Assembly: GCA_047495785.1 (NCBI GenBank)
Contig: JBLDXI010000002.1
Location: forward strand, 124,001 to 188,000
DNA: 64,000 nucleotides
Reading direction: 5' to 3'
From: Lepidodermella squamata
Taxonomy: Eukaryota > Animalia > Gastrotricha
Part shown: positions 25,140 through 52,122 of the stretch, one piece after another
Layout of the letters: each line of letters starts with the position of its first letter
Position numbering within the stretch: position 1 is the stretch's first letter
Notes under the pieces: generated by a model
Databases searched by the model: none
What the model was told of the DNA's origin: nothing
What the model saw: the letters and a program-made list of their open reading frames with translations, nothing else
Position numbers and translations under genes: made by a program

Positions 25140-27580
25140 TCACGTAGGATTCGTTATTTTTGAGGAGGAACATGAGCTTGCTGCGATGTTGGCATTTGAA
25201 TCAGATGCAGCAATTGGCTTTTTCGAGGGGAGGAATCCAGGGTAGATCCAAAACGCTGACAAAATAGCTGAATCGATGACGGTAACAAACGCAATAGCTT
25301 CCTGCTGTTTAATCGCATCTGACTCTACAGTTATGGCGATCAGAATTGAAGCCGGCAAGAGCGTACCTCCGGCGATAACTGCGAGACAGCATGGTACGAA
25401 CTCATGGCAGCTGGTGGGTACTCCTTTTGTCTGTCTCAATCGGGACGCATACATGGAGGCTATTGCTATCAATAGGAATTCAATAACTGCCACAGCTCCC
25501 AGCAATGACCATCCAATCCCTGGTTTCATCGCACATCGGACGAGCCAAGCTTCAATCATAGCGTCCAAACTTTCATCGTACGTCGGTTGAGATGCTAGCT
25601 CATAGGCGCAGAACATACCATTGCTAACCGACCAGCCTATTAGGATGACCAGGTTGACAAAAGCGACCGAAATAGCTCCAATACTAGTTTGTTTGTCAAA
25701 CGTTTTCCAAATCTCACACGGGAAAGACACGGCTAATTTTGGAGAAATGGCAGCGCCTTTTGATAAAACTTTCTTAAGCAAGCCGTTCGATTTAGTAAAA
25801 GTGCTCCTAGTTGTCCCTATTTTCCTGGCTTTCCCCTGTACTTCGTGTTCCACAGTTTGAACAAAGAAGTAAATACTTATCACCCGTGTGGCAATCAAGC
25901 TAAAGACAATTGAAATTCCGATACCGAGCAAGAAGAGGCACGTTATTGCCAGACGTGCGCTGTCTAAACCCCTATCAATGGTAAAAGTCCCAGCTGCTGT
26001 ATTAAGGATTAAACAGCCAAGCAGGCCGAGTATTTTCGATAACTGGAAATGAAGTTGTCTCGGCTTATTCAGAGTGATCGCAATTGCTGAACCAGATTGA
26101 ATTAACGTCGTGATAATGATGAAAAACCAGCATACACCGAAAGAAGTTGTTGAAACGTGTTGCACATTTCTGTTAACGAGAAGACGGTCCCGAGGAGGAG
26201 CTCCAAGTGGCCATGTAATAGGCCGTAGAAATCGAAATTCGTAGCTATCGAGTGAAAACTCTGAGAGGCCTCTATCGAGCTTCTGACGAATGTAAATCAA
26301 GTCTTTGCTGCCATCAGGGGTCCATTGAGTCACAGTTTGAATGTCGCCCATGGGCGAGCCAGATGAACCAAAGGCCGACCTTCCTATCCTCATTCCTATG
26401 AAATCGGATGATAGAGCAGATTCGTTCGCGATTCTAGCGACTAGTGAGGGGTTGGAATAATAGTCGCGAAGGGTAAAGTTATACTCAGACTTGAGACGAA
26501 GCTCAGTGTTGTGGAGGGCGATGAAAGCTGTTGAAAAAGCGTCATAAAACATGTAAGATGTGATGAGAATCGAATCTGCTGTTGCTCGGGTTGCGTTTAT
26601 TCCCTTGATTATGTAAGCGTCGTAGTCAGCTGCATTGTCTCCGAGAGAGGTCAGTCGACTGTAGTTATCGGGCTTGCCAATGCTGCCAAAGTAATACGTT
26701 TGCCTAACTTGAGCAATCAGCTCTTTTTGCGAGCAATCCTGGGTCATGGTGTTGTCAACGCTGATCGCGGTAATCAGAGCAACGAAAGCGTAACGAGGTC
26801 CCCGCATTCCTTGTTTGAAGGCGAAGCACAGAAATCGGACGACGTGGTAGTTACTAGCTATAGTCATCACGATCACCCTTGCCCCTGAATTTTTGATGAT
26901 AGCTACGTCTTCCGAGGTTACGCTTGCAACAGCCACATTACCAAAAAATACGTGAAATGCCGCTATTTCAAATCCATTCGCAACGGCCTGGTCATGAAGC
27001 AATATTGCTGTTACATAGTCATTCACGTTCCCCATAAACGCTGTAATTGCTATTCTGTTCCAATTCCCGATTTCCCTGATAAACTTCAGAATAGTGATCG
27101 CCGTGGTTTTGTAGGTAGGAACACGCAGGTAGAGATTAGGGTATAAATAGTGATCGGCGAGGAATGGGGCAGTGCATGACGGACTTATCGCAATCTGGTC
27201 GATGTAACCGACGACACGACCCATGGCTCGACATCCAGCAGATTGAGCCGGGCCAACTATGATTGGAGATAGATAACCATTCCGCCCCGATCCATCGAAT
27301 TCTCGGCTGAAGAGAACAGCCTCCTTTGCAGCATTTATGCCGAGTAGGTCTTCGCGATGGACAAATTCGATGTGATAATCTGGCAGAATGTCGCTTCGAT
27401 TATTGACGCGATCAACGGCAAGTTGCACTGTTAGAAAAATCGCGGCGCTTCGCTTAGCCTCAACTTCTAGCACCGGAGTGAGGAATAAGACTTTCAAGCG
27501 ATGCGGTTTGATTTGCGAGTCAACCGCTAACACCATATAGTAGCCAACGTAAGTGCGGCTAGATGAATCCCGGGAAACAT
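25140..27580 (-). pseudogene. GABA-B-like class C GPCR, copy 6; frameshift inside the signal peptide
   Basis: ATG 27580 gives MFPGIHLAALTLAT, then two out-of-frame bases (27537-27538), then MVLAVDSQIKPH; paralogs read ...IAAMMVLAIDSQ. The remaining 798 codons are intact. Confidence 0.7.
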
Positions 27581-28750: not shown

Positions 28751-29951
28751 TTAATAGAAATGCTTAGAAATAGCGAGAAGGATGCAAATGAGAAGGCTGT
28801 AATTAGTGAGGACATCACCAGCGTTGTTATCCGCGTTGCTATCCTTGCGGCCTTTTTCAATGACCTTGCCAACCGACGCGCTGTAGTTATCCAGAGTACA
28901 CGCCTGGTCCATGTGGCCCTTGCAGCACGTGACTGACATGTTGAAATTATCTGAAACCAGTAGCGATTTCGAACATTGCGGTGAGCACTGCTGCGTCCGA
29001 GACAGAGGTTTGTCGTTAGGTTGGCGCATGCCGGCCCCTAGGGATTTGTACATGCGAAGGCAGACGAAGCCCTTCTGGCACGTTTGCAGGTTGGCTGATT
29101 TCCAATCTGCTGGGCAATCGTCCTGGCACGAGTAGCATTGATACGTCTCGCCTATTGTACCTGAGTCTGCGTTGTTGCTCTTGCGATTTTGAGCATTCGC
29201 ACTTTGGACTGAAATTCACAGTCACAGTGTAGAATTTGTACAGCGAAAAGTAAAAAATAAGGAACCTCAATAATTTCAAAACAATTATTTACCCCGAAGT
29301 TCGATCATTATCTAAACATTTCAACCATTATAAAAATTTAGAAAATTCGGAAAAAATTGGAAAATTGAAAATTCAAGAATGAGAAATTTTAATATTAAAA
29401 ATTGTAGGCTAGGCCGAGGCTCTTGAATTTTTTTCAATTTTTTCAGTAAATTTTCAAAAATTTTCAAAAATTATTTAAATGATTTTTGTAAATGATTTTT
29501 ATTTGAATAATTATTATGAAAGATTTTTTCTAAAAAATGTGAGGACTTTTGGAAGATATTTTCAGGAGGTTTTCGGATGTCTTGTCTTCGGTTTTTTTCA
29601 TATTTATAAATGTCTGTTTCCAGTGAAAACCTTGCTGCTTGCTCTATTACCAAATTATAACTTTCATTAAGAGAATGAAAAATGTCATTGATGACGTTCT
29701 ATTCTACGTATATCGATGAGCTCAAGTTACGTACTAAGTTAAATCAAAAATTAATTACGCTAAATGATTTCTGACTATTAGAATAGGGCAAAAATATGGA
29801 AAATTCCGGATATTTCGACATTTTTACGCAATTTCTCAATGTTCAGGTAATTTTAGGTAGTATTTTACTGTACAATTTGGAATTTCGTCGTAAACTCACC
29901 TAAACAAATAGCGACAATCGTTGAAAGACCAACTATCAGCTTGTTCTGCAT
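28751..29951 (-). CDS. Ly6/uPAR (three-finger, LU) domain protein with GPI-like C-terminus; exons 29900-29951 and 28751-29208
   Basis: Signal MQNKLIVGLSTIVAICL with donor G|GTGAGT and acceptor TTTCAG; 10-Cys pattern CYSCQDDC..W.SANLQTCQKGFVC...CSPQC...VTCC...C; hydrophobic tail YSLLICILLAIS. Confidence 0.82.
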
Positions 29952-33670: not shown

Positions 33671-36600
33671 ATGAATAACAATTTCGACCCGATGACAAAT
33701 TACTACGACGACGATGCCGATTTGCTGGGCATAACGCGAACAATTTACGTGCCCCACTACGAAACCACCACGCCCATGGACCACTCGATGCTGGCGACAA
33801 ACAACGACAACGAAGCAATATCGTACCTAACATCAGAAGACGACAGCTACCTAGTGCAGCCGACAGTCGATACAAAAGTCGCTAGCAATTACGCTGAAAT
33901 GGCTTATGACAACATCAACAATTATAATATCAGTAATGGAGCAGTGTTAGATGCTGATAGCAACTCATCCTACGCCCTAATCGATCTCGTATCAGCCACC
34001 CTATCGACAACGCTACTCACGTCGCCTGAACCGACCTACGAGGAAGAAATGACAACACGGCCGGCTTACCTGTTCACGCGGACTAGCTACTACAAGGTGC
34101 CTAATACGTTAACAACCCAACCGGCCAGCATCCACGACCAGCTCGGCTACAACATTATGGCCGGGCAACAAGAGTTTGAATTTTCTCGCCTGCCGTTTTT
34201 TATCGTCGATAGCTTCACGACGCTGCTAGCTTTGATTAGCAATATATTGGTTGTTATTGCGATATCGCGTACCAAGCTGTCGACGCCCATGGTTGGCTAT
34301 CATCGGTTCATTTTGAGCCTTAGCGTAGGGTGCCTCATAACGACGTGCACCGTCGCGCTGTCGTTCATCCATGAAATTGCACTCATTTTCGCGCCTTATC
34401 CTAGCCTGGTCAGTTTTTATTTATCATGATTTTCGCTTTTAATTTCTTAATTTTGTCGGTCAACCCCGAGCGAGTGAAATTAGCTTCAAAGCGGTTCTTA
34501 AACAAATTTCCAATTCTTTAACTCTTCTGTAAGAATTCAAGATGGGTGAAATGCCAAGATTTTAACGCTTCAGAACTTCGAGGGCTATATTCCCCGTTAA
34601 AACAAGCCTGGAATTTCATAGGAGATGGATTTGTGTGAAATTTTTACAGAATACGCGAATTCAAGAATCACTGATTTTCTTGAAATTTTAAAAATAATTT
34701 TGAAAAATTGAAATTTCATATTTTAAATTCCGATTTTTCCATATTAATTTTCAAGTTTCAATCACCTCTCGTATGGAATGGATTAAGAGAAGACCAAAAG
34801 TAGGAATTTTGGTACGGCGACAAGACAGCAACTTCGCAGAACAGCGAACGCGACAAAACAGCAAATTTTTATTTCGCGACGAAACAGCGAAAACTTACTA
34901 TATAAAAGATGCAGTGTTTCTGCTGTTATGTCGCAGTTGAAAAATATGCTGTTTTGTCGTGTTTGCTGTTCAGGATATTTGCTATTATGAATGTCTGCCG
35001 GAACATTTGGAATCTGGATCTTTTTGTTCCACAACTCGCTACAGTTGCGGATCCAGCACTTACATATTCTGATTTGTACCATTTCGATGTTTTTTCCTAC
35101 CGTCGATAATAATGCCGCATATGTATGACCTCCATTTCATTTTATCAATCAAGTGACCTAATATTCGAAGATTTAATCTGTTTTATATTGAATTACTAAA
35201 CTGTTGTTACCGGGAAAAATCACTGATTTTTAAAATCGATCAATGAAATCGATATCGGCTATGGGCTCATGAGGCTAAAATTAAATGAAAATGGAGAAAT
35301 TGAGATAAATGATAAACAATGTTCTTACCAATGCAATTTTGCTGTGATCGATCAAAGTCTGGAGCTCTCCTCATTCGTACTTCCATTTGGTTAAAAAAGT
35401 TTTCCATCTCTTTTCTAAAAATCCGTATATTATTGTTTTTATGTATATTTCTGTTCAATTCAGACTCGAAAATGCGGCGACACGTTGATAAAAGGCCTCA
35501 TGAACGTCGGCTTTGCCGGCGCCCTGTTGTCCATCGCCGGCCTCACACTGGACAGCTTTGTCGGGCTGTTTTTCGACGCCGAGCAGTACAACGCGACGAC
35601 AAAGCGGCGAACGCGCGAAATCACCGTCGGCATTTGGTTGTTCGCGGTCGGCTTCGGACTCACTGATCTGCCCCTATCAGCCGTTCATTTCTTCTCCACC
35701 GGTGGACATAAATTTATGAAAAGTCGCGATATCGACTTTCTGGACTGGTGCAACGTCTACATTGTCAACAAATACCGCCTTGAATACGCGTTATTAGGTA
35801 CTTCAATCGAATAGAAATTCAATTTGGCTATTGAAATTGCTAAAATGTCTCAATTTTCTCAAATTTCAGAATTTCATAAAATTTTCAATTTGTTTTCAAA
35901 AATTTCAAATTTCAAAAAAATCAAATTTTAAAATTTCAGAAATGAAATTTTAAAATTTCAGAAATCAAATTTTAAAATTTCAAAAATGTCTCATCAATCA
36001 AATTTCAAAATTTCAAAATTTTCCACAAATTTCGAAAAATTTCAAAGAAATTTCAATTCAAAAAATTTCATACAATTACACAAATTTCACAAATTTCAAA
36101 AAATCGAAAAAATTGAATAAATTTCAGGAATTTGCCCGATCTCGGGAAACATCCGCAATTTTTTCATTTAAATTGTTCTTTAATATTTTTCTTTACATCC
36201 AACCTACCTATACTAATTTTTTGCCTAATTGAAATTAGGTGTTTCACTGCCGTGCTTCATCTTCGTATTCGCCACCATATCGCGCCTTGTCATCGAAGTG
36301 CGCCGATCCGATGTGTGTTGGTCGCCGAACAACCCAGACAGGCGCTGGGTATTCCGCCGTTTCGTCACGACTACATTCATGGTCATGGGCCTGTTCACAG
36401 TTTTCTGGCTGCCCCACACCATCCTAGACGTATCCGTCGTACTAATAGCTGCTATCTTGACTGGGTATTCTGTTCCGACTGATGCGTCGCTGGAATTCTT
36501 GCGGTATCTATTAAGGACGTGGCTGATGATTGGACAGCTCAGCATTCCGATAATTTACGCTATCAGATTCAGGCGAAGGGTCAGGCGACAACTGGTCGAT

Positions 36601-37275
36601 TTCTTCTCAGCTGTCTGCGGGTAATTAATTTTGAAAAATTCAGAAAAATAAAGCAAAATTGAAATTTTTGAAAAAATCAGGAAAATTGAAAAATATAATT
36701 TATTGATAATTAGAAGATTTTAAATTAAATTTTTTTTAATTAAAATTCAACATTTTGAATTCTGCATTTTACCAAATTATCTAAATTTTTGTGGGTCTTC
36801 ACAGAGTAAATTGTTTCAAAGAAAGTGGATCGGAACAAATGGTGCCCACACCAGATGAAATGCCTTCGAAATGCATCGAAGTAAAATTTGAAAAAAAATA
36901 TGTTTCAAGTGCTTGCGGACACCTTATTTTACGCAACGATCAAACTTACTTTTTCATTTGCATGCGAGCCTTCAATTTATTTTCAAGCTTTTTTAATATA
37001 CTTTTTTATTTTCTATTGGTTAAAGACCCTTAATTTTGTATTTATCGATCAATTTTTTACTAATTTAAATTGATTTTCTACAATTATTTTCTAGGGATGG
37101 CGATGTTAACATTCCAGAAATAGCCGATGACGAAGAGGCTGAAGCGCCTACAATTCGCCACTTACTCGCCTGTTCCAGCATCGTCGGCTTTTCATTCGAC
37201 GACTCGCGCGGCTCGTTCAAGGCGAAATCGACCCGTAAGCAGGCCTTACAACGCGTCAAATCGTGCCGAGTTTAA
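33671..37275 (+). CDS. Orphan rhodopsin-like (class A) GPCR with long Thr/Tyr/Asp-rich N-terminus; exons 33671-34408, 35464-35797, 36239-36620, 37095-37275
   Basis: Phase-consistent GT-AG splicing; TM1 ALISNILVV, TM2 FILSLSVG, Cys at top of TM3, DSF at the DRY position, TM4 Trp, TM6 FTVFWLP, TM7 IPIIY. Confidence 0.82.
34811..34999. mobile_element. Palindromic MITE-like repeat in GPCR intron 1
   Basis: Fold-back of ACAGCAA/TTGCTGT units; second copy at 57392-57582 with the same start GGTACGGCGACAA and core AAAACTTACTAT.TA.AAGATGCAG. Confidence 0.75.
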
Positions 37276-37474
37276 TATCATCATCATATCTATCTCTTAA
37301 TTATTGCTCATCGATCGACACTGAACCATCCCTATATAGTATAACTTTACTCGTTAATTTTTGTTTTTTATGATCAGTTAATTTTTTTTGTCTCAACGTC
37401 CCATTGTTATTATCTCAATAAAAATGACCCGTGATTAAGGTGAATTTTTTTTTTCATTTTATTTTGACAATTTT

Positions 37475-38782
37475 TCACAATAAAAATACAGCTAAGAAAA
37501 GGGCCATTTCCATCCTTGAATATTTCAAAATATTTCCTAAGGATTTTAAAGTGTTGCTTCTTGCCGGTTCATCAGTCCTAATTTCAGACGATTCGCTGAA
37601 TTTTGCAGCTGAAAAAAATGGAAAGAATTAAAGGAAAAATTTGATATATTTCAGTTTTACTTAAATTAGATTTGAACTCGAGCATTAAAATTGGAGATTC
37701 TTCGATGTGGATTTTGCATTGCGTTGAAATCATCCGGCCACGCATGACTGAGCAGCACGAGTACGTGTCATTAAAGCCGTCTTGTTGCGCGTTGACATTG
37801 ACGCAAATCGGGGCTGTCGAGGTATCTTTCTTGAAATTTAGAGTTCGTAAAAATCCCAAGCTTGAACCTTAAAAAATTCGAAATATTATTGGAAAAAAAA
37901 TAAAATGTTACAATGATGAACAATTCAACAATAAAAATCTATCAAAAAAACAAACCATCAGCTATAATTATCATGTTTCAAGTGAGAACTTTGAAATTTC
38001 TTGTTGGGAAAAGTTGAAATTGATTTTTTACCTCTTGAAATGACAGTTTTGTTGCAATAGCTCGATTGGCGGTAAGTGCTACAGCAAGACGTTGTCATGT
38101 TGATTTCTCGATTCAGAACTATCGATTTGTAGCAAACTGTTTGCACTTTGGCAAGTTCGGAAAATTCACGCATGAACTGCACCAAAGATCCTGCAAATTT
38201 CAATTTGAAATTTAGAAAATTAAAGTTTAAAGTTTAAAAACCTTTCGATGGCCTGACTTCGTCCATTCGGCAAGCCAGTTCCTTAGTTGTAGCTCGTTCG
38301 ATAACGCAACAAGTCAGGGCCATTTTCACCTGATCGCCCATTTCATGGTACTGTTTATGGCAAACATGCTGCTTTGTCGTCGAATTATTAGCGCCTGAAT
38401 TCGAACTGCCAGCCGGTAAATTCACATCTGCAAGCAAAAAAGGTTCAAATTATCCTGTTTCCAATTTCAAAAAAGACGATTCGATTATAGAATCATTTCC
38501 AACTACATAGGGATTTATCTTTTGTGGGAATTTAAGAGTATAATAGATTAAACCTTGAATATGGCCACCGATTGAGCAGTTGATGACTTGCTGATTGGGG
38601 CAGCAGCGAATATTCAGTTTCAAATGCTCGAATTTCTGCGTTGAACAATGCGACCCATCAGCTGTTGGACCTGATACTTCGCATTGACAATTAAACTTGA
38701 AAAATTAAGAAAAAATGTTACCAAATTGAGCGAATCGAACCGCGAAGAGAATAACAATCAAATATACTAGGACGTAATTCAT
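37475..38782 (-). CDS. 273-aa secreted/GPI-type protein with four tandem C-x(13-16)-CC-x(7-11)-C modules; exons 38722-38782, 38554-38670, 38242-38427, 38032-38190, 37661-37825, 37475-37608
   Basis: Signal MNYVLVYLIVILFAVRFAQFG; all five introns are phase 1 and internal exons are multiples of 3 (117, 186, 159, 165 nt); ends MEMALFLAVFLL*. Confidence 0.8.
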
Positions 38783-40267: not shown

Positions 40268-41132
40268 ATGGGTTTATCAACTCTATTTTTTCTCGCTGCG
40301 GCACTGTCGGCCGCCAAAGCTTGCCCGCCTTCGACTACCACTAGTACCACAACATCCTGCCCAACGACAACAACTTGCTCAACTGGTCAAAGTTGTTTGA
40401 CAACTGCCAACTACTGCGACCTGTCAACAAGCAACTGCAACCTCAAGACAGCTAATCCATGTCCATCAGGGCAGACATGCGCCGCTCCAGCCAGTTCGTC
40501 TACGGTAATGATGAAAGTGTTCATACGCACCGAATAACCTTTCAGTATTATCTAGCCAGTCTTCAATCGCTGCCAACTTACCACACAAGGCGGCAGCGGA
40601 ATTGGCGGCAAAACGATACAGTTCTGCACATCGACTGCTGTTGCTTGTAATGCAGCATTGACAACTGGAACAGCTGTAAGACCAACTCCCAATTACGCTT
40701 TTGCGGTAACGGTTCTTTTATAGGTTGGCTCGAGTACCTATTCGTCGTTTGCTGAATGCTGCGCGGCCGTTACGCCGGCTGCCGATTTGAAATACGAACC
40801 CATCCCAGGCTCGCCACCAATTCTAGCGTGCATAGGAGCCTTGAGTCCGACACCGTATAAATTAGCTGCTTCTGGCTCGTCTTTATTCTGCTTTCGTTTT
40901 CCTGAAACCGGGCCTGGCACTTTTGCGCAGGCCAGTCCGCAAGTAAGATTAAAGTATCATTTCTGAAGGCTATTCATCAAATTGCTTTTCCAAGACGTTG
41001 AAAAATGGATTTACGGCCAATTCAGCGAGAACCTTTCCAGAATGCTGTGACATATTTGGGGCGAGTCTTTCAACTTATGGTAACACGGGCAGTGCATATG
41101 GCCTCAACTCGTTTGATATATGCCAAAAGTAA
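40268..41132 (+). CDS. Secreted Cys/Thr/Ser-rich protein of unknown family; 4 exons (~40268-40504, 40556-40675, 40724-40942, 40995-41132)
   Basis: Signal MGLSTLFFLAAALSAAKA; three short phase-0 GT-AG introns give a continuous frame ending FDICQK*; motif (S/T)FxECC occurs twice. Confidence 0.75.
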
Positions 41133-42837: not shown

Positions 42838-43464
42838 AGTTCAGAAAATTCACGCATGAACTGCACCAAAGATCCTGCACATTTTATAATTTCAATTTTA
42901 AAATGTGAAGTTTTTTCTAATATTTTTCCGAATGACCTTTTAATGGTCTGACTTCGTCAATCCGGCAGGCCAATTCCTTAGTTGTAGCTCGTTCGATAAC
43001 GCAACAAGTCAGGGCCATTTTCACCTGATCGCCCATTTATGGTACTGTTTATGGCAAAAATGCTGCTTTGTCGTCAAATTATTCGAAATGCTAACTGGTA
43101 AGTTCACACCTGCAAGCAAAACCGGTTCAAATTATCCTGTATCGTATTTCACAAAATATGACGATTCGATTTCAGGATTGATTTTAATCATCTTTTTGGG
43201 GAATTTCAAAGCATATTAGAATTAAACCTTGGATATGGCCTCCGATTGAGCAGTTGATGACTTGCTCATTGGGGCAGCAGCGAATATTCAATTTCAAATG
43301 TTCGAATTTCTGCGTAGAACAATGCGACCCATGAGCAGTTGGACCTGATACTTTGCATAGACAATGAAAAATCCGGAAAATTAAACTATGTGGAAAATAT
43401 TACCAAACTGAGCGAATCTAACCGCGAAAAGAATGAGAATCAAATATACTAGGAGATAAATCAT
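42838..43464 (-). pseudogene. Truncated paralog of the four-module gene at 37475-38782
   Basis: Exons 1-3 and the start of exon 4 are conserved; 1-nt deletion in exon 3 (gcccatttatgg versus gcccatttcatgg); ends at the transposase remnant. Confidence 0.8.
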
Positions 43465-43919: not shown

Positions 43920-44630
43920 TCATCTTTCATCTAGCAAGAATCGCCCTCTCCTTTTAACATTTTCATCCCAAACAACGTAATCGCCGTCATTAAAGTGCCG
44001 TAATTTCGAAAACACGTCTCGCATCGCAGACTTTTCATCCGGAGTTGGCAGCCAGACAAAGAGAGGCAGCGATTCCGCGAATTCCATTTGCTCCTGTTCG
44101 CTTGCGCCCAGCATTTCGGCAAGTTGCCGACCGAGTAAAGCATTCGACTGGCTTGACGACCGGCCTTCGGCGCCAGATCGTTTACCCGTAATTGCCTCGA
44201 GCCTAACGGCTGAATCTGATCCTTGCAACAGCGAATTTCGTTGCTTCTTCACCTCCGGGTTAAAGAATTCGTAAACGTCAACGGCTATCTTCCATACTCC
44301 ATAAGCAACCGCCCCGTAAATTAGCGTGAGCACTATACCGATGAAGATCTCAGATGGGCCTGAATGTTTGATGAAACTCTTCAGTTCAGCTTTTTTCAGA
44401 CTGAAAACGCCCGGCTTTGGGGGCTTGGCTACAGGGTTAACCAGCTGAATCTGGGAACCTTTTGCCGTATTTCTCAAAGTTGCCGCATCGAATCTGGCTT
44501 GCCGGCGTTGCAGCTTGCGCGATAGCAGTGGCAAAGATATTCGGGCTTCATACAATGGCAGAAGTACGTTCTGGCACAGAAGGGCGATGGAAATCGTAGA
44601 TGCGGCTGCTGTCATCCGACCGTTAGCCAT
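43920..44630 (-). CDS. Intronless prepro-like protein with one internal hydrophobic helix, unknown family (paralog A)
   Basis: 236-aa ORF; hydrophobic leader, RKLQRR/Q basic site, hydrophobic segment IFIGIVLTLIYGAVAYGVW; C-terminal domain clearly shared with 45151-45843. Confidence 0.75.
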   Translation of the reverse strand: MANGRMTAAASTISIALLCQNVLLPLYEARISLPLLSRKLQRRQARFDAATLRNTAKGSQIQLVNPVAKPPKPGVFSLKKAELKSFIKHSGPSEIFIGIVLTLIYGAVAYGVWKIAVDVYEFFNPEVKKQRNSLLQGSDSAVRLEAITGKRSGAEGRSSSQSNALLGRQLAEMLGASEQEQMEFAESLPLFVWLPTPDEKSAMRDVFSKLRHFNDGDYVVWDENVKRRGRFLLDER

Positions 44631-45150: not shown

Positions 45151-45843
45151 TTATTCATTTTCCTCAATAAGCAGACGCCCAGTCAATTGAACGTTATCAT
45201 CCGTGATAGCATAATCTTTCGACACATCTTTAACCTTCAAAAATGTGTCATTCTTTGCAGATTCTTTATCCGGCGTTGGTATTGGGACGAAGATAGGCCG
45301 AGATTCTGCGTAACTCCTAGCGTCTTCCTCACTAATCCCCATCGCTTCGTTGAGTTGGCGTCCGAGCACTTCGTCTGAGTCCATACTAGATCGCCCTTCA
45401 ACATTCGACTGCGAACCTGCAAGAGCGCCCAAACGTGCCGCACGATCATGTGCTTCGCTCTTGGCTTTATTTTCCCCCAGATTCGAGATGACTTGGTAGC
45501 CTTTGATCGCAATGTACGAGACTGCCACTACAAAAAGGGCTTCCATTATGAGGCCGAGGCCATATTTTTTCCATCCGCCGTGAGCCTTCGCCGCAGCATT
45601 CATGGTCTTGATACTCCCTTGGACAGCTGAGTTATCATAGAAATGACTTTTGGCCATCTTTGCTCCTGTGGAGAAGAATGTCTTTGTCTTTGTAAGACTT
45701 TTCTTGAAAAAGCCCATATCAGCCTGCCGTTTCTCGAGACGTTTTCTGGTAGGTAATTGATTAAGCCGGTAGGCTTCATGGATTGGCACTAAGATCAGCT
45801 GGCTGATGAGTGCCAGCGAAAAGATACTGGCAAAACGCTTCAT
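45151..45843 (-). CDS. Intronless prepro-like protein with one internal hydrophobic helix, unknown family (paralog B)
   Basis: 230-aa ORF; leader MKRFASIFSLALISQLILVPIHEA, RKRLEKR/Q site, hydrophobic segment, conserved EGRSS...LGRQL...PTPD...GR.L tail. Confidence 0.78.
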   Translation of the reverse strand: MKRFASIFSLALISQLILVPIHEAYRLNQLPTRKRLEKRQADMGFFKKSLTKTKTFFSTGAKMAKSHFYDNSAVQGSIKTMNAAAKAHGGWKKYGLGLIMEALFVVAVSYIAIKGYQVISNLGENKAKSEAHDRAARLGALAGSQSNVEGRSSMDSDEVLGRQLNEAMGISEEDARSYAESRPIFVPIPTPDKESAKNDTFLKVKDVSKDYAITDDNVQLTGRLLIEENE

Positions 45844-46119: not shown

Positions 46120-46963
46120 CTAAAAGACAATAGAAAGATAATGTAATGAAAACAATATATTGAAAATTTGAAAATGAATGTGATATTGTCCTACTTCCCC
46201 CCTCAATCTCTCCGCGGATAAATTGGTGTCCTTAAATCTAAATGTTGACCTACAATTCGTGGCTAATTCAACAAAATACACCATAAAAATGACTATTCTT
46301 AGTTACACTAAATATACTTTCGAGTTTTAGGAAGGAAAGGATACTGAATGCTGACTGCTGATTTTCACAAAGGGATTTCAGTTGTAGTTACCTGCTGTAG
46401 TGGTATTCAACGGTGCAGAAATAGCTGCAAAGCCTTTAGATTTTCTCGTTTCAAGAGAAGTTTTAACAGTACTCTCATTTATAGTAGCAGTAGTAGTCGA
46501 TGTCTCTCGAGTCGTTGACCGAGGTCGGTTGGTGATAACAGGCCTAACAACCGGCGCTTTGTACCGCTCAATGTCGCACTTCTGATCTTGGTAATTCGCA
46601 CAGCATGACACTGACATAACCATCATGCCGGTATCCAGGTAGATTTTCGAGCAATCATCCGTGCACGACTGCAACCTGGTCACACTTGGCTCCGTTGAAC
46701 TAGGCGATTGCATGGTTTGAATCATTCGAACGCAGATTTGGTTCTCAGGGCATTTTTGAAGTTCGGGCGAAGTCCAATTTTCGCTACAAGAAACTTTTTC
46801 ACTGCAAATGTAGCATTCAGCTGGGCTAGTCTGACTGCTGTTGCCTTGACAGAACCCCTCTATCACAATCGCTATTGGGAAGGATATTAAAAAAAATCTA
46901 ACAAGAAAAATCCGACTTATTACCAAGAAGAAGAACTATGTCGTAAAATGTGATTAGTGCCAT
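46120..46963 (-). CDS. Ly6/uPAR (LU) domain protein with Thr-rich stalk; exons 46924-46963 and 46392-46871, 3' exons uncertain
   Basis: Signal MALITFYDIVLLL|AIVIEG across a phase-1 intron; CYICSEKVSCSENWTSPELQKCPENQIC...CTDDC...VSCC...C. The end coordinate depends on a tentative two-exon 3' model. Confidence 0.72.
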
Positions 46964-51624: not shown

Positions 51625-52122
51625 TTATTCAAACCAATCTTCGTAAATTGGCTCATCATTTGTGTTTTGAGTAGTTGTTGGGACCTTTGAGGTCGAAGTT
51701 GCGATAGGGTGGCTCGTAATCTCGCAATTGTTGTCCTTGTAATCCACACAGCACGTGACCGTGGAGTTAAGGAACTGCGATACCAGCTTCGATTTCGTGC
51801 ATTGGGGTGAGCAGGAACTTGAGTATTCAACTGGTTTGCCGTTGAAACGCCACTCGGGCGACACTGAGCGATACTCGCGCTTGCAGACGTGATCTGGCGG
51901 GCAACTTTCAAGCTGCGGCGAGGTCCAATCTTCTAAGCAGCTTCCGTTGCATTTGTAGCACTGAATAGAACGAGTTTGTCCAACTTTTCCTGTGGGTGCC
52001 GTTAACGACCATCCTGATAACACGAAAACATAATTCGAAATTCAGTGTAATTAAAGGGAATCAAACAAACCAAAGAGGAATACTGATCCAAACAGTAGGA
52101 TCGAAAGCCTAAGCGAAACCAT
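51625..52122 (-). CDS. Secreted Ly6/uPAR (LU) domain protein with no obvious GPI tail; 2 exons
   Basis: Signal MVSLRLSILLFGSVFLFG|GWS across a phase-1 intron; CYKCNGSCLEDWTSPQLESCPPDHVC...CSPQC...VTCC...C; polar end PIYEDWFE*. Confidence 0.8.

Follow-up and report, generated by a model that had tools for sequence, protein, structure and literature searches.

Can part of the LU (three-finger) domain, which is usually seen as indivisible, stand alone as a protein module and be multiplied as an exon? The question is raised by a locus on the minus strand (38782-37475) of the window, that is, of the whole 64-kb stretch of DNA analysed, which is animal DNA with short spliceosomal introns. The earlier note on this stretch had read the locus as a gene for a surface protein with four four-cysteine modules, each on its own exon, and had proposed that the C-terminal part of the LU fold became an autonomous module that was multiplied by exon duplication. 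The LU domain is a three-finger fold of 60-90 residues with 8-10 cysteines (10 plesiotypically) and the bonds 1-5, 2-3, 4-6, 7-8 and 9-10, the last two of which are local; its final cysteine, C10, is immediately followed by an Asn that carries no glycan (PMC6600238). Single LU proteins are less stable once the 7-8 disulfide is lost, the canonical domain is encoded by an exon pair, and LU exon sets are flanked by phase-1 introns (PMC6600238).

The gene model was built by hand from six minus-strand exons, which join into a single frame of 287 codons, and was verified by exon-wise translation and a script check. Exon 1 (38722..38782) supplies the start codon and a signal peptide in 20 codons plus one base and ends at a phase-1 donor (GTAACA); the hydrophobic core of the signal peptide is VLVYLIVILFAV, and residues 4-15 have a mean Kyte-Doolittle score of 3.4. 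The next four exons span 39-69 codons, are all phase 1-1 and contain exactly four cysteines each. Exon 2 (38554..38670; 117 nt) encodes module 1 (C-x13-CC-x7-C) with one N-glycosylation sequon, exon 3 (38242..38427; 186 nt) a Ser/Asn-rich linker followed by module 2 (C-x16-CC-x11-C), exon 4 (38032..38190; 159 nt) module 3 (C-x15-CC-x8-CN), the most Ly6-like of the four, and exon 5 (37661..37867; 207 nt) module 4 (C-x15-CC-x11-C), flanked by about 20 and 18 residues. Exon 6 (37475..37608) encodes a polar spacer, a candidate omega site (S-L-G) and a hydrophobic end of 10-12 residues (...MEMALFLAVFLL, then stop), the final 10 residues having a mean Kyte-Doolittle score of 3.05. An AATAAA polyadenylation signal is located 12 nt past the stop codon (37458..37463, minus strand), and the introns (51, 126, 51, 164 and 52 nt) have GT..AG borders in all five cases. 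The cysteine spacings, the placement of each module on its own symmetric phase 1-1 exon, and the flanking of these exons by a hydrophobic signal exon and a tail exon with a hydrophobic end were thus found as the earlier note had described them. The protein contains six N-glycosylation sequons in total, and we somewhat favour a lineage-specific gene of about 287 codons, the product of which is probably secreted, N-glycosylated and located at the surface. GPI anchoring appears fairly probable on a heuristic reading of the exon 6 tail, the hydrophobic end of which is only 10-12 residues long.

A loose regular expression for the cysteine motif produced 14 matches in all six frames of the window, eight of which corresponded to the four modules, the copy of module 1 in a duplicate of the gene (see below) and three neighbouring Ly6-like genes, while about six were background. 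Since four matches fall in consecutive, phase-compatible exons of one frame and background matches are few, the arrangement is not due to chance. The duplicate (42838..43464, minus strand) is located 4.7 kb upstream of the four-module gene and is truncated, retaining exons 1-3 and the start of exon 4: E1' (43464-43404), E2' (43344-43228), E3' (43109-42937), with a 12-nt deletion and a frameshifting 1-nt deletion, and E4' (42874 to about 42838), consisting of the first ~37 nt of exon 4, after which similarity stops abruptly. All splice sites in the retained part are intact. Identity between gene and duplicate was 91% in exons (320/351; 87-93% exon by exon) and 79% in introns (170/216; Fisher p 4e-5). 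In the predicted frame, dS was 0.30 and dN 0.048 (dN/dS 0.16; Fisher p 6e-7), with six synonymous and two non-synonymous changes in exon 2. Because dN/dS is 0.16 in the predicted frame, that frame is, as judged from the pairwise sequence comparison, under purifying selection, and the same value suggests that the duplicate remained constrained over much of its history. The four-module locus is very probably a real gene.

Three Ly6-like genes with 10 cysteines are found on the same strand in the window. LUa (28754..29215) has a single-exon Ly6-like domain and a GPI-like tail that is similarly short, LUb (46381..46935) is a Ly6-like exon, and LUc (51628..52122) consists of a signal exon with a phase-1 donor, an intron of ~57 nt and a single 10-cysteine exon; it has no hydrophobic tail and is on that ground probably secreted. 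Translation confirmed that all three end in C-x15-CC-x7-C, as had been claimed, and the Asn after the last cysteine is absent from all three. The whole LU domain lies on one exon in these neighbours, unlike the canonical two-exon layout. All three matched the Pfam family Toxin_TOLIP below the family threshold (E 0.012, 0.041 and 0.017 for LUa, LUb and LUc, respectively), in each case over the entire profile, the LUa match spanning profile positions 2-68 of 72, and a search of PDB sequences with a profile of the neighbours returned chance matches only. According to a search of the 121-Mb genome, LUa, LUb and LUc are the sole members of their subfamily. The four-module gene and its truncated copy sit between LUa and LUb, all on the same strand, and the four-module gene shares with LUc a signal exon that ends ...F|G in phase 1 and a first intron of ~50 nt.

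Module 3 was compared with the neighbours by Smith-Waterman alignment, and 5/1000 and 2/1000 cysteine-fixed shuffles scored as high as the observed alignments to LUa and LUc, respectively (p 0.005 and 0.002). The alignment to the neighbours spans C7 to C8C9, and residues other than cysteines are held in common, namely K-S after C7 and N-M-S/T before the CC doublet. In the comparison with LUc, similarity continues upstream across the position of C6, where module 3 has an Ala. The module unit therefore looks, on these alignments, less like the third finger alone than like an LU C-terminal half from which C6 has been lost. For a comparison of profiles, the four module exons were aligned by MAFFT with the LU sequences left out (profile A2) and compared by hhalign with a profile of the LU sequences (A1; 83 columns). 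The match (probability 75.5%, score 29.7, E 2.4e-5) covers LU columns 51-82 of 83, corresponding to C7-C10. Controls in which columns or rows were shuffled with the cysteines fixed scored 10.2 +/- 2.2 and 11.3 +/- 2.6 (maximum 21), placing the observed score at a z of ~7-9. When module 3 was removed, a score of 24.1 was retained over columns 52-77 (controls 11.6 +/- 2.7, maximum 20.5). Taken singly, module 3 has a strong LU signal, modules 2 and 4 a marginal one and module 1 none, and none of the values for modules 1, 2 and 4 reaches significance. A search of all 1590 six-frame fragments of the window with an HMM of the LU neighbours placed the exon 4 fragment top after the neighbours themselves (E 0.009-0.02; HMM positions 48-78 of 81), with the fragments of exon 3, E3' and exon 5 among the top ten.

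The modules resemble one another weakly, with pairwise identities of 12-27% and p about 0.04-0.05 for the best pairs, so that the case for exon duplication draws on the shared cysteine frame, the exon phase and the predicted fold. Introns 2 and 4 were examined for relics of LU fingers 1-2, and their read-through frames lack cysteines. Searches of each exon against Pfam gave no LU family (UPAR_LY6, Toxin_TOLIP, QVR and similar) at E values up to 10. Exon 4 gave a sub-threshold Pfam match to Ins_beta (nematode insulin; 17.6 bits, cut-off 21), and among PDB sequences module 3 gave only a chance match to an insulin A-chain-like CCSxYxxxxYCN (E 1.2). An insulin-like reading of module 3 was rejected, since six cysteines would be needed and module 3 has four and sits in a multi-module chain. 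Whether queried with module 3 or with the module profile, the PDB sequences returned chance matches only, including one to viscotoxin (E 0.6).

Structures of modules 3 and 4 (exons 4 and 5 only) were predicted singly by AlphaFold. With the four-row alignment as input, module 3 (mean pLDDT 73) was given one helix (residues 2-12) and three strands (17-25, 29-38 and 42-51); module 4 was modelled with a core at 20-53 (pLDDT about 75), strands at 20-28, 31-42 and 45-53, and disordered flanks. The two were thus predicted, with moderate confidence, as the same three-stranded meander. Strand 1 begins with the first cysteine in either model, strand 2 terminates in the CC doublet, and strand 3 contains the last cysteine. 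This placement fits a disulfide-closed hairpin with a C-terminal loop in the models. The three-finger fold has six strands (A-F), and the module models show three only. Foldseek and VIA-align searches with these moderate-confidence models gave no match to a three-finger or any other known domain, so that the structural comparison with LU domains yielded a meander common to modules 3 and 4 and no three-finger match. The proposal that the C-terminal LU part became an autonomous, exon-duplicated module accordingly held in one respect, the alignment of the module profile to the C7-C10 columns above controls, and fell short in another, as a clear signal was obtained in module 3 alone and a Pfam, PDB-sequence or fold match for none. 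A match of the modules to a different known domain, which the earlier note had named as overturning its reading, was likewise not obtained in Pfam, PDB sequences or the fold searches.

The design of the gene is in several respects that of LU proteins such as uPAR, C4.4A and CD177 (PMC6600238), with a signal peptide on a phase-1 signal exon, symmetric phase-1 exons and a putative GPI-type tail, and it shares with LU proteins the C7-x15-C8C9-x7/8-C10(N) frame, the setting in a tandem LU gene cluster and the repetition of units in one chain. Unlike LU domains, the modules have four cysteines and lack fingers 1-2 together with the 1-5, 2-3 and 4-6 disulfides, and their 9-10 spacing is longer (7-11 residues). 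Of the four modules, only module 3 has the LU-type Asn following its last cysteine, and there the Asn belongs to an N-K-T sequon; the corresponding residue is S in module 1, R in module 2 and K in module 4. Multi-LU proteins repeat whole domains on exon pairs, whereas here each unit is one exon. Among the hallmarks of LU membership, exon phase, signal exon and paralogue cluster were found, while the cysteine count, the Asn, a match to a curated profile and the fold were not. As the modules differ from LU domains in cysteines, profile and fold, they are not LU domains, and would be at most derivatives of the C-terminal half of one.

A precedent for tandem domains with a reduced number of fingers is provided by the Argos/2FTX proteins of protostomes, which are secreted and consist of two or three tandem three-finger-toxin-like domains with one finger missing (bioRxiv 10.1101/2025.07.03.662903; Klein et al. 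2008 as cited there). The 2FTX domains are four-stranded and keep fingers I-II with ~3 disulfides each (Tx33.1 has 12 cysteines over two domains), and their intron phases are 0, 2, 0 or 0, 1, 0 (bioRxiv 10.1101/2025.07.03.662903). In contrast, the four-module gene keeps the counterpart of finger III, with two putative disulfides per module, and its introns are phase 1. No sequence match to Argos was obtained in the PDB sequence searches with module 3 and the module profile, and Argos was not among the top 50 VIA-align matches for either of the moderate-confidence module models.

Relatives of the protein were sought more widely, with single exons or the module profile as queries. Six-frame searches of the animal's own genome with the four module exons and the module profile returned the gene itself and the truncated copy only; one further weak match was rejected as the antisense strand of an ankyrin gene. 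A full HMMER search with exon 5 against 1.84 billion representatives yielded two matches, both spurious (one to a bacterial adhesin with repeats, the other to the translation of a junk repeat), a metagenome scan with exon 4 gave no relative, and the ESM Atlas gave no usable match for exon 4. Word searches with exons 4 and 5 gave no match, not even to the protein itself, and the same was true of a word search with the neighbour LUa. As the collections also lack LUa, the missing self-match of the four-module protein says nothing about expression. The earlier note had not recognised the architecture among described families, and no relative was obtained from Pfam (all exons), PDB sequences (exon 4 and the module profile) or the 1.84 billion representatives (exon 5).

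The absence of any identical or related protein from the collections searched, and the fact that the sister copy is a frameshifted, truncated pseudogene, could be taken to mean that the locus is a decaying or non-expressed relic, or that the exon model is wrong. We consider this improbable, as the frame of 287 codons runs unbroken through five canonical introns, the low dN/dS is seen in exactly the predicted frame, exons are more conserved than introns, a signal peptide, a tail and a poly(A) signal are all present, and LUa is missing from the same collections. The four exons could also be read as two LU domains in degenerate form, with eight cysteines apiece and each distributed over an exon pair; the count of eight cysteines in each pair would agree with this, as would the canonical LU layout of an exon pair flanked by phase-1 introns (PMC6600238). 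This arrangement is nevertheless very unlikely. A CC doublet is found in every exon, compared to one per LU domain, no exon has an N-terminal C-x2-C or C1-C5 pattern, and the most finger-3-like exon (exon 4, with its CN) would come first in its pair. Moreover, exons 4 and 5, folded singly by AlphaFold, each form a self-contained meander, and the module profile aligns to LU columns 51-82 only.

A more serious competitor, though still a doubtful one in our view, is that a genuine gene carries a four-cysteine module, a small lineage-specific disulfide bead, which arose independently of LU domains; the C-x15-CC-x8-C frame, the finger-3 likeness and the place in the cluster would then be convergence and coincidence. 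Such an origin would agree with the lack of a family, PDB-sequence or fold match to LU and with the restriction of clear similarity to module 3. It agrees less well with a profile similarity that is position-specific to the third-finger columns and persists without module 3, with the top rank of the module 3 fragment window-wide after the LU neighbours themselves, with the inclusion of the K-S and N-M-S/T residues in the similarity, and with a strand, a cluster and a signal-exon design common to the four-module gene and the LU genes. The findings against an origin from an LU half also include the following: the domain of the LU neighbours lies on one exon, with no intron that could yield a half-domain exon; the neighbours are themselves only sub-threshold Pfam matches with no PDB sequence match; and no orthologue was found. 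On the whole we lean towards a secreted, N-glycosylated and probably GPI-anchored protein, the modules of which most likely derive from the C-terminal half of the local LU domain, and the LU-half origin, taken on its own, seems to us reasonably probable. The fuller proposal is more tentative, namely that this half became a self-folding two-disulfide mini-domain, which spread as a phase-1 exon and gave rise to a GPI-anchored 'one-finger' repeat protein.

In a working model of the LU-half origin, in which we infer that all four modules are homologous, how their disulfides pair, that the protein is GPI-anchored and what it does, the ancestral piece would have comprised the surroundings of the lost C6, finger 3 with its closing 7-8 disulfide, and the 9-10 loop. 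Because the four cysteines of the C-terminal LU half pair among themselves, such a piece could survive without fingers 1 and 2, and, being bounded by phase-1 introns on both sides, it could multiply in frame. Each module would then fold as a disulfide-stapled hairpin or a three-strand meander, and the four together might build a short glycosylated stalk or binding surface at the cell membrane. By analogy with Ly6 proteins, the role is most likely that of a glycosylated surface stalk or recognition protein, which would act in surface recognition or receptor modulation. If the LU-half origin is true, the locus would document how part of the three-finger fold gave rise to a protein module of its own, a complement to the two-finger Argos/2FTX domains, and would offer a concrete case of a new exon-shuffling module arising from a piece of an older domain. 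A constrained repeat with only the 7-8 and 9-10 bonds would show that a sub-structure of the LU domain can stand alone, in an animal with an unusually broad diversification of its Ly6 family. Until expression, fold and function have been demonstrated, the practical value stays modest.

Several other open reading frames were noted in and around the cluster. Two single-exon ORFs on the minus strand (43920-44630 and 45151-45843; 236 and 230 aa, respectively) are clearly paralogous by eye, each starting with a signal-like segment and containing a single hydrophobic segment further in, and gave no Pfam match. A small plus-strand ORF (40268-40537), also with no Pfam match, opens with a signal-like segment and continues into a mucin-like stretch rich in Thr, Ser and Cys. 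The Ly6-like cluster is flanked by an ORF of 798 aa with multiple hydrophobic segments (25140-27536, minus strand) and by several plus-strand ORFs (33671-36624) that resemble exons of seven-transmembrane receptors.
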